Positions 51,701 to 54,700 of a stretch of DNA of 64,000 bases are shown piece after piece. Position numbers and translations under genes: made by a program. The stretch is taken from the NCBI GenBank assembly GCA_002269645.1, contig NIVC01000008.1, forward strand, positions 1 through 64,000, given 5' to 3'. Every line of letters starts with the position of its first letter. Within the stretch, counting starts at the first letter, position 1. The DNA is from Macrostomum lignano (Eukaryota). The notes under the pieces are model-generated. The model did no database searches and was not told where the DNA came from. It saw only the letters and a program-made list of their open reading frames with translations.

Positions 51701-54700
51701 CAGACTCTGCCCTAGGCGAATTTATGTCGAGACTGCAAAAAAATTTGGCTTCCCAGAAGCGGCAGCAGCAGCAACAACAGCAAAATGTTGCGCAATCTTC
51801 TGAAAGCAGAGACTCGGCTACGAATGCTAATGGAAACCAGTTCCCGAAGGTTGCAAGCTTTGCTTTTCAATGCGTCTGTGTGATTTAAATTTAACTGCCC
51901 ATTTTTATTTTTCCAGGAAACGACGAGTTTCATTCGGTTCTCCACTGAGTATAGTTCCTGTGAGTAGATTATCTGTTTCTGCCACAAATGTACTGAGAGC
52001 CTGTCATGAATAATCATGTCATAGTAGTCATACTGCTAATCAAAAGTCGTCTCTGATTGGCTCGGCGTAAATCAATGCTTGTCTCTTATTGGCCAACTGC
52101 TAATCAATAGTCGTCTCTGATTGGCTCGGCGTAAATCAATGCTCTAAATCCTATTGGCTGGCTTTTAATCGATACTCGTCTCTCATTGGCTGACAGAGAA
52201 GCCCTATTTCCGCTCCAGGACCAGCAGGAGCACGAGCGCTACCTGCAGGATCTTGTACGCCGGCCCGTGCAGCAGGAGGACGCCAGCCTCACCGACGAGG
52301 ACAGGCAGCGGAACTCGCTGCTCCTGCGCCAGGCCGCCGAAGCCAGCAGCCGTCAGAGGGAGGACAGCACCGCCTCGTCACCAGACAACTCGCCCCGGCA
52401 CAACAACCGGCCAAGCAGGACTTCTTCGTCGTTTTTGTCGTCGCTGAAGGTCTCTATTGGCTTCTGGAGGGGGATGGACCCTCCCTGAACCCGATCCCGC
52501 AGCAGGAGTCACACAGACCCTCTCTGAACCCGATCCCGCAGCAGGAGTCACACAGACCCTCCCTGAACCCGATCCCGCAGCAGGAGTCGCACAGACCCTC
52601 TCTGAACCCGATCCCGCAGCAGGAGTCACACAGACCCTCTCTGAACCCGATCCCGCAGCAGGAGTCGCACAGACCCTCTCTGAACCCGATCCCGCAGCAG
52701 GAGTCGCACAGACCCTCCCTGAACCCGATCCCGCAGCAGGAGTCACACAGACCCTCTCTGAACCCGATCCCGCAGCAGGAGTCGCACAGACCCTCCCTGA
52801 ACCCGATCCCGCAGCAGGAGTCACACAGACCCTCTCTGAACCCGATCCCGCAGCAGGAGTCGCACAGACCCTCCCTGAACCCGATCCTGCAGCAGGAGTC
52901 ACACAGACCCTCTCTGAACCCGATCCCGCAGCAGGAGTCAGACTACAGCCTGTGGAGCCGGTCGGAGACCGCCGGGGCTTCACTCTCAGCTGACGAGTTC
53001 TCCGGGTCGCAGTCGCAGGCCGATCAGTCTCAAGATGCGGAGGTGGCAGCGGCACCTTCGCAGCCCAGAGAAGCATCGAAGGCGGACCAGCTGGTGCCGT
53101 TCCCCTCGCTGCCGAACTCCAGGCTGCACTCCCTGTCCCTGCTGCCGGCCTCTCTGTCCGACTTGGACGCCAGGAACGGCTCCGTGTCCTTAATTGACCC
53201 GAGCCGACGATTCCGCCTAGACGACATCCCGGACACGGAGCTGGAGGACCGGGTTCGCGCCCTAGCCATCTCCTTCTCCAATGACGCCACCACCCTGGTA
53301 GTTCGGGTCAAGCGGCTGTTCCTGGCCCGGACAAACCAGGAGCAGGACATCAGCTCGGAGCTGCAGGCCCTGGAGTCCGACCTCGCCAAGGCCAACTCGG
53401 GCGAGCAGCTGCCGCCGACCTCATCGAGGTTCGTCGTGCTCAGAGAGCTGCTGGAGAAGCTCAACAGGACGTCGGAGATTCTCGGAGCCGTGCAGCAGGT
53501 CGGTGAACTTGACGAATGGGAGACATCGTTGTTTCTTTGAAAAATTTAAAGGCTGGGTTCGCTCAAACAACCAGCGATTTCCTGACACCCGAACAGGAGA
53601 GCCGCTTGAACTACGCGTTTCACCTGATGCTGAAGCACATGGAGCTGCTCAAGGAGGACAAGGAGAAGTTGACGGTGGAGCTGGAGCAGATGAGGCCAGT
53701 GAAAACTCCTTGATGCAGATCATTGAATTATAATTCTGTTATATTTATCTGATCGCTATCTACCAAATATAGGCAAGCGATGGATGAAGGAAAATTCTAC
53801 ATGCCGGATGAAGACCTGATGAGCAAGCGGTCCAAGTCCGTCATTGGAGCGGCCAGTCAGAAGGTGCTGTCGGCTTATCAATGCTCACCCTCTCCAAGTC
53901 CAGTCTCACCCTCTCCCAGTCCAGTCTCACCCTCACCTAGTCCAATCTTATCCTATCATAATCCAGTCTCACCCTCACCTAGTCCAGTCTCACCCTCACC
54001 TAGTCTAGTCTCACCCTCACCTAGTCCAGTCTCACCCTCTCCTAGTCCAGTCTCACCCTCACCTAGTCCAGTCTCACCCTCTCCCAGTCCAGTCTCACCC
54101 CTCCCAATCCTGTCTCACCCTCTCCTATTCCAATCTTATCCTATCATAATCCAGTCTCACCCTCTCCAAGTCGTCTCACACTCTCCCACTCCAGTCTCAC
54201 CATCGGCCTCACCTATTCCAATCTTATCCTATCATAATCCAGTCTCACCCTCTCCCACTCCAGTCTCACCCTCTCCCAGTCCAGTCTCACCCTTTCCCAG
54301 TCCAGATTCACCCTCACCTATTCCAATATTATCCTATCATAATCCAGTCTCACCCTCTCCCAGTCGAGTCTTACATCTCCCAATCCAGTCTCACCCTCTC
54401 CCAATCCAGTCTCACCCTCTCCCAATCCAGTCTCACCCTCTCCCCGTCCAGTCTCACCCTCTTCTAATCCTGTCTCACCCTCACCTATTCCAATCTTATC
54501 CTATCATAATCCAGTCTCACCCTTTCCCAGTCCAATCTCACCCTCTCCCAGTCCAGTCTCACACTCTGCCACTCCATCTCCCCTCCCGTAGCAGGAGAGC
54601 CAGCGCAGCAAGTTCCAGGATCTCGGCCGAACCGTGGCCAGAACTTCGTCCATCACGTCGCTGCGCAGGAGGATGTCACGTGATCTAAAGAGCGCGGAGG

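Follow-up and report, generated by a model that had tools for sequence, protein, structure and literature searches.

We analysed a 64,000-nt stretch of contig NIVC01000008.1 from the Macrostomum lignano assembly GCA_002269645.1, hereafter the window, in which a 39-bp minisatellite runs across a 3' splice site of a gene that, judged by homology, is IRAG/MRVI1/Jaw1-like. Tandem Repeats Finder (TRF) resolved 52477-52940 as one tandem array with a period of 39, 11.9 copies, 95% matches, and 0% indels. With the copies set in register, 12 junctions of the form ...CCCGATCC(C/T)GCAG|CAGGAGTC were found (with a longer left flank, CTGAACCCGATCC(C/T)GCAG|CAGGAGTC). Their exon starts followed 52503+39k with k = 0 to 11 (52503, 52542, ... 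52932), acceptors 1 and 12 being exactly 11 x 39 bp apart. Every unit carries CTGAAC 13-14 nt 5' of the AG and the junction CAGCAGGAG, which is of the NAGNAG type (literally CAGCAG), and all 12 acceptor modules are identical over at least 39 nt upstream. This identity arises because the duplication unit spans the junction and is not an independent coincidence. The pyrimidine content was below 70% in the 18 nt upstream of every array acceptor, including the last one (52932). Variation between units is confined to three columns of the unit table, namely A/G and T/C at third codon positions and a single C>T that changes Pro to Leu. The sole GT in each unit, GGA|GTC(A/G)CA, is a weak, non-consensus donor-like sequence, and introns running from unit to unit would be 39n-5 nt long and out of frame. 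Outside the array, the window yielded no more copies of the 39-mer, nor did it yield a spliced-leader gene.

A search of 5.8 billion protein clusters was made with a query consisting of exon A, two repeat copies, and exon B, i.e. the junction plus repeats. The matching proteins were two from M. lignano in UniProt, A0A1I8GFA6 (P0001, which represents two identical UniProt entries) and A0A1I8JFG4 (P0002). All of their exons were 100% identical to the window, and the exon maps re-translated to both proteins exactly. The features of the locus are as follows.

P0001 exon map, plus strand: 52219-52449, 52932-53498, 53597-53667, 53773-53863, 54592-54710, 56004-56331 (exact re-translation)
P0002 exon map, plus strand: 52219-52449, 53013-53498, 53597-53674, 54592-54710, 56004-56331 (exact re-translation)
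52219-52449, plus strand: exon A, DQQEHERY...SSFLSSLK, ending in phase 0 at AAG|GT (100% tblastn identity to residues 1-77 of P0001 and P0002)
52450-52455, plus strand: 5' splice site GTCTCT, a weak match to GTRAGT and the sole donor for the array intron in both models
52450-52931, plus strand: array intron of P0001, 482 nt = 53 + 11 x 39 (exact re-translation)
52477-52940, plus strand: 39-bp minisatellite (TRF, unit table)
52485-52502, plus strand: first 3' splice-site module, CTGAAC...CCCGCAG, exon start 52503, giving a 53-nt intron
52914-52931, plus strand: twelfth and last 3' splice-site module, the P0001 acceptor, exon start 52932
52932-53498, plus strand: exon B, QESDYSLW...GAVQQ, which holds the start of the MRVI1-family conserved region FPSLPNSRL...
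52990-53012, plus strand: alternative 3' splice site of P0002, exon start 53013
53864-54591, plus strand: intron nearly filled by a 21-bp minisatellite (53884-54585)
54711-56003, plus strand: next intron, nearly filled by a 19-bp minisatellite (54791-55989)
Spliced junction with the last array acceptor: GCTGAAG|CAGGAGTCAGACTAC, extended ...GTCGTCGCTGAAG|CAGGAGTCAGACTACAGCC
Spliced junction expected for any inner acceptor: GCTGAAG|CAGGAGTC(A/G)CACAGACC, also given as ...GCTGAAG|CAGGAGTC(A/G)CACAGACCC
Spliced junction with the P0002 acceptor: ...GCTGAAG|TCGCAGGCCGATCAG

The P0001 junction ...SSFLSSLK|QESDYSLW corresponds to the twelfth and last acceptor of the array (52932) and includes zero repeat copies. 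In P0002, the junction ...SSLK|SQADQ places the exon start at 53013, 81 nt or 27 codons 3' of 52932, at an acceptor with a perfect CTGAC branch consensus 19 nt upstream (52990-52994) and a TCGCAG|TCGCAG tandem. The array begins 27 nt past the donor and ends 9 nt beyond the P0001 acceptor, and its inner copies lie wholly between the used donor and acceptor, inside the introns 52450-52931 (P0001) and 52450-53012 (P0002). The two models contain no repeat copy in their annotated coding sequence, and use of more than one array acceptor was not seen in them, the only sites being the last array acceptor and 53013. The repeat peptide was absent from all proteins among the clusters searched, even though the query held the junction and two repeats. 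An earlier note on this DNA had proposed that the array is a splice-tunable spacer, and the junctions of P0001 and P0002, together with the lack of any repeat-bearing protein among these clusters, speak against that proposal. As far as protein models can tell, they match, short of proof, the alternative in the same note that this is an ordinary variable number tandem repeat (VNTR), here an intronic one.

P0001 and P0002 share their first position: each opens directly at the acceptor 52218|52219, in phase 0, and lacks an initial Met. The spliced leader (SL) of M. lignano ends in ...TTGCATG (PMC5173321), and SL trans-splicing at 52219 would yield MDQQEHERY... in frame, with the leader supplying the AUG. 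Since a start at this position is what SL-trimmed transcripts would give, P0001 and P0002 are probably transcript-derived, and the gene may have two expressed forms, a long one made by cis-splicing and a short one made by trans-splicing. P0001 and P0002 are also distinguished by two donors 7 nt apart, 53668 (GAA|GTTGAC) and 53675 (ACG|GTGGAG), and the choice between them goes hand in hand with whether the 91-nt exon 53773-53863 is included or skipped. An exon-start motif AG|(CAG)GAG(T/A)(C/G)C is common to the acceptors 52932, 53597, and 54592 (CAG|CAGGAGTC, CAG|GAGAGC, and TAG|CAGGAGAGC, respectively), which may reflect a preferred motif or coincidence. A further protein, P0056 (A0A1I8IUW7), consists of Hsp70 fused to antisense translations of exons B and A (53057-53533, 52371-52454, and 50672-50884, minus strand), and its antisense 'intron' spans the entire 39-bp array; it is likely an annotation artefact.

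The family assignment of the host gene was examined with Pfam. P0002 matched PF05781 (MRVI1) at 28.2 bits, borderline against the gathering cut-off of 27, and P0001 scored 20.6 bits; the raw exon translation alone gave no match, which appeared only with the spliced proteins. A full HMMER search returned 37 relatives, and the eight scanned with Pfam all matched MRVI1, five of them at 146-210 bits. The protein has a C-terminal hydrophobic tail anchor after a coiled-coil region, conserved with its paralogs. A C-terminal tail anchor following a coiled coil is a trait of the MRVI1/IRAG/Jaw1 family. The array intron lies at the edge of an unconserved Ser/Pro/Gln-rich linker, approximately 55 residues before the conserved FPSLPNSRL block, and the alignment of this block agrees with the placement upstream of the MRVI1-homologous region given in the earlier note.

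An exon homologous to the paralog N-terminus was located at ~46112-46246, upstream of the model start. We had considered that the gene starts at 52219 and that upstream exons belong elsewhere, and we dropped this possibility in view of that exon. Its homology indicates that the gene spans an Hsp70 gene and that the UniProt models are 5'-partial or trans-spliced forms. The Hsp70 gene is intronless (47689-49605, minus strand; Pfam HSP70, 851 bits) and appears to be nested in an intron of the IRAG-like gene between ~46112-46246 and exon A. A candidate upstream exon at 51621-51849, with an ATG at 51725 and ending in ...FPK, would join exon A in frame. A second candidate of 43 nt (51917-51959, ccag|GAAACG...TTCCT|gtgagt) leads to a stop when placed after the first; in another frame it encodes a PKA/PKG-type RRxS site, a suggestive find in a family of cGMP-kinase substrates.

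The coding consequences of each acceptor were examined by in silico splicing. The upstream exon frame (mod3=1) ends at 52449 (AAG|GTCTCT) and meets a stop inside the array when read on, and the downstream frame (mod3=0) is open across the whole array. Whichever of the 12 acceptors was joined to 52449, the product was free of stops and held a 13-residue unit 11 to 0 times, one copy of which reads ...NPILQ in the spliced product, and the possible intron lengths were 53 + 39k nt, i.e. 53 to 482 nt. The TRF, register, and frame analyses therefore bear out what the earlier note had said of the array itself: 12 in-frame tandem acceptor copies in 39-bp units, first and last acceptors at 52503 and 52932 spaced by 11 x 39 bp with no stop in frame, a full-length in-frame product with 0-11 copies from any acceptor, and a 53-nt intron with the first one. 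Its description of the splice signals held for CTGAAC, present in each unit, and not for the 'pyrimidine-rich run', which is weak in that no copy reaches 70% in 18 nt. Two of the three forward frames of the 39-bp unit are open. In a codon-position test, two of the three variable columns were synonymous, and with three columns only, the probability of at least two of three under random transitions was P=0.29. Unit variation gives no significant signal of coding constraint.

The array was compared with the repeats around it. Tandem repeats made up 27.8% of the window (40 arrays, 16 of which have a period divisible by 3), and tandem plus simple repeats account for 15% of the M. lignano genome (PMC5730564). 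Several introns consist almost entirely of minisatellite: 53864-54591, 54711-56003, and 51960-52218 in this gene, and 10067-11452 in locus L001 (NIVC01000089.1 of GCA_002269645.1), which carries the paralog BOX15_Mlig018486g2 (PAA91350.1, P0039). Arrays in the two genes leave 19-80 nt free after the donor and 6-26 nt ahead of the acceptor, which implies that the branch and pyrimidine signals of array-filled introns lie inside repeat units. Subtraction of the arrays suggests ancestral introns of ~47-56 nt that were inflated by repeats. The 39-bp array fits this pattern (482 - 11 x 39 = 53 nt), except that its unit extends 9-13 nt past the acceptor.

The intron 53864-54591 served as an internal control for acceptor choice. 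In its 21-bp array, 34 modules combine a branch-like motif with YAG and a pyrimidine content of at least 70%, and none of these 34 decoys is both in frame and stop-free, so that each would truncate or frameshift the protein. Considering that the conserved C-terminal region shared with the paralogs is encoded downstream of this intron, productive splicing must skip the decoys and take the exon-adjacent site. In the paralog, the counterpart of exon B has a translated repeat of six copies of SVRFDPADSPPEPAA in 48-54-bp units (L001 14873-15221) that begins approximately 30 nt into the exon; two models of this paralog have the same repeat number and are distinguished by two cassette exons. Homology between the 39-bp array and the paralog repeat, prompted by 'PDPAA' in another frame, was rejected, as the best local DNA alignment was 8 nt (shuffle p=0.81). 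Elsewhere in the window, open reading frame fragments on the minus strand resembled a protein disulfide isomerase/thioredoxin (~19403-21262) and a PPP-type Ser/Thr phosphatase (~31629-33624), and a 41-bp array (32336-33092) lies between exons of the latter.

With moderate confidence, we favour the view that the array is an ordinary intronic minisatellite of the IRAG/MRVI1-like gene and that its exon-adjacent copy is the main acceptor. An ancestral intron of ~53 nt would have reached 482 nt as a 39-bp segment across the 3' splice site was duplicated in tandem; this segment would comprise the last 26 nt of the intron (the branch-like CTGAAC, a C-rich tract, and the AG) together with 9-13 nt at the start of the exon. 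The founder unit may have been 42 bp with one codon lost later, because the 3' part of the unit (TCA-CACAG-ACC) resembles the exon after the array (TCA-GACTACAG-CC). The spliceosome would mainly take the copy abutting the real exon (52932) and sometimes 53013, as the gene models suggest. Because the 12 modules are identical over at least 39 nt upstream, the choice among them would have to come from sequence downstream of +9, that is, exon context or enhancers. Looping out of the array or masking of the inner acceptors by RNA structure was rejected, since folding of 52440-52990 was no better than that of shuffles (z=+0.87). Occasional use of inner copies would add 13 residues at a time, in frame, to the unconserved Ser/Pro/Gln-rich linker and may be harmless; such leakage would not be caught by nonsense-mediated decay, and its only effect would be a longer disordered linker. 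A 3n unit that is open in the exon frame probably explains why the array is tolerated, since inner-site use stays in frame, and a tuning function is not needed. Selection for a tuning role is not required by any observation, because the identity of the acceptors is automatic, a 3n period occurs in 40% of the arrays, two of three frames are open, and the synonymous bias in the codon-position test is not significant.

Several points weigh against the intronic reading. By sequence, the first acceptor equals the last, and the 53-nt intron that it defines is similar to the inferred ancestral sizes; intron-definition or first-come models would favour this acceptor (52503). The basis of the UniProt protein models is uncertain, and the same annotation set holds the obviously spurious antisense chimera P0056 across the locus, which shows that ab initio pieces are present in that gene set. 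Large duplicated blocks occur in the M. lignano genome (PMC5730564), and the source of P0001 could be an array-less duplicate or allele of the locus, in which case the P0001 junction would be uninformative on acceptor choice here. Exact-protein look-ups of P0001, P0002, and the neighbouring Hsp70 found no other copy of the locus on record, and an Hsp70 homolog search with cluster listing returned only UniProt entries and ~2-kb transcript contigs that fall short of the array. Finally, the translated repeat of the paralog in the same exon indicates that the linker accepts repeats.

If several of the 12 sites were used appreciably, a ladder of 0-11 copies of the 13-residue unit would result, possibly dependent on allele, tissue, or condition. 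The identical, in-frame, and stop-free modules would permit this, exon B already has alternative 3' splice sites (52932 vs 53013), the paralog has a translated repeat in the equivalent exon, and repeat isoforms are hard to assemble from short reads and so could have missed annotation. Nevertheless, we consider multi-acceptor use unlikely: every protein model has zero repeat copies, in the decoy-rich introns of this gene, splicing evidently takes the site next to the exon, the units show no significant sign of coding constraint, a 3n period and an open frame are common by chance in the window, and nothing observed suggests regulation. Graded use of the 12 acceptors, in which splice choice together with array copy number would set linker length (0-11 x 13 residues), seems distinctly unlikely.

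It is very doubtful that the array is an exonic coding VNTR, with 52503 as the true acceptor here, 11 copies translated, and the zero-repeat models stemming from gene copies that lack the array. The 53-nt intron would match the ~47-56 nt proposed for other array-filled introns, models based on proximity or first-come selection point to the first site, the two common unit variants are synonymous third-position changes, and the paralog carries its translated repeat approximately 30 nt past the equivalent acceptor. Against this, none of the three UniProt entries (two sharing the P0001 sequence) has repeats, and the collinearity of P0056 with the window indicates that the locus was assembled in that annotation set, yet no sense model bearing repeats is present. 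The synonymous bias is not significant, and the paralog repeat is non-homologous to the array and excludes its own acceptor. That the copy number or the whole array is a long-read assembly error is scarcely credible. The M. lignano genome is hard to assemble owing to its repeats (PMC5730564), but the variants within the array are structured (subtypes A/G and T/C and one C>T) and indels are lacking, which is atypical of noise, and similar arrays occur across the window and at an independent locus of GCA_002269645.1.

The intronic minisatellite was then compared with known systems. The repeat of the paralog BOX15_Mlig018486g2 lies in the same family and exon, in the linker upstream of FP(S/P)LPNSRL, and also has a 3n unit; unlike the 39-bp array, it sits inside the exon without an acceptor and the models translate it, and no homology between the two was detectable. 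Zhuo et al. (PNAS, 2007) reportedly described alternative introns born from tandem arrays. Gene-structure changes driven by tandem repeats were described by De Grassi and Ciccarelli in 2009 (PMC2812944). As in those two sets of arrays, the 39-bp units carry splice signals, offer many equivalent choices, and can place repeats in intron or exon. For those arrays, alternative use is backed by transcripts, whereas here acceptors are repeated and donors are not, the units do not supply both 5' and 3' splice sites as Zhuo-type arrays do, and the inner copies are unused in the models.

Intronic VNTRs near splice sites are known from ABCA7 (PMC5954066) and from TERT intron 6 (VNTR6-1; PMC11830802). 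Like these, the present array has units of tens of bp inside an intron of a coding gene, near enough to a splice site that it could matter for splicing, and it is probably variable in copy number. In contrast to them, its unit includes the acceptor plus 9-13 nt of exon, and each copy is a perfect in-frame duplicate of the 3' splice site. NAGNAG and other short-distance in-frame tandem acceptors (PMC2699507, PMC2279118) share the 3n spacing and the in-frame indels in a disordered region, but their spacing is 3-9 nt rather than 39 nt. Because every array site comes with a branch-like motif and tract of its own, selection would fall at the branch-site/U2AF stage instead of the second step, at which the AG is chosen. 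CAG-repeat expansions that act as splice acceptors (Anderson et al., PMC10614865) likewise offer many AGs to an upstream donor; those are pathological trinucleotide repeats that produce aberrant RNAs, whereas the 39-bp unit was copied from a genuine junction.

The array is unremarkable given its repeat-rich surroundings, and the kinds of system to which it belongs are already known. It is probably one of many such cases in M. lignano. Tandem or simple repeats form ~15% of the genome, and short introns of this gene family are routinely inflated by minisatellites. If several copies were used, this would be a rare case in which the length of a protein linker is set jointly by VNTR copy number and splice choice, and graded use, if true, would make the locus a natural setting in which to study how fully equivalent 3' splice sites are selected. 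Exclusive use of the last copy would make it a clean natural demonstration that splicing can disregard eleven perfect duplicates of the 3' splice site lying upstream, complete with branch-like motif, and that acceptor choice here depends on downstream exon context. The general pattern, in which arrays fill introns to within a few bases of the acceptor, may outweigh this single array in interest.

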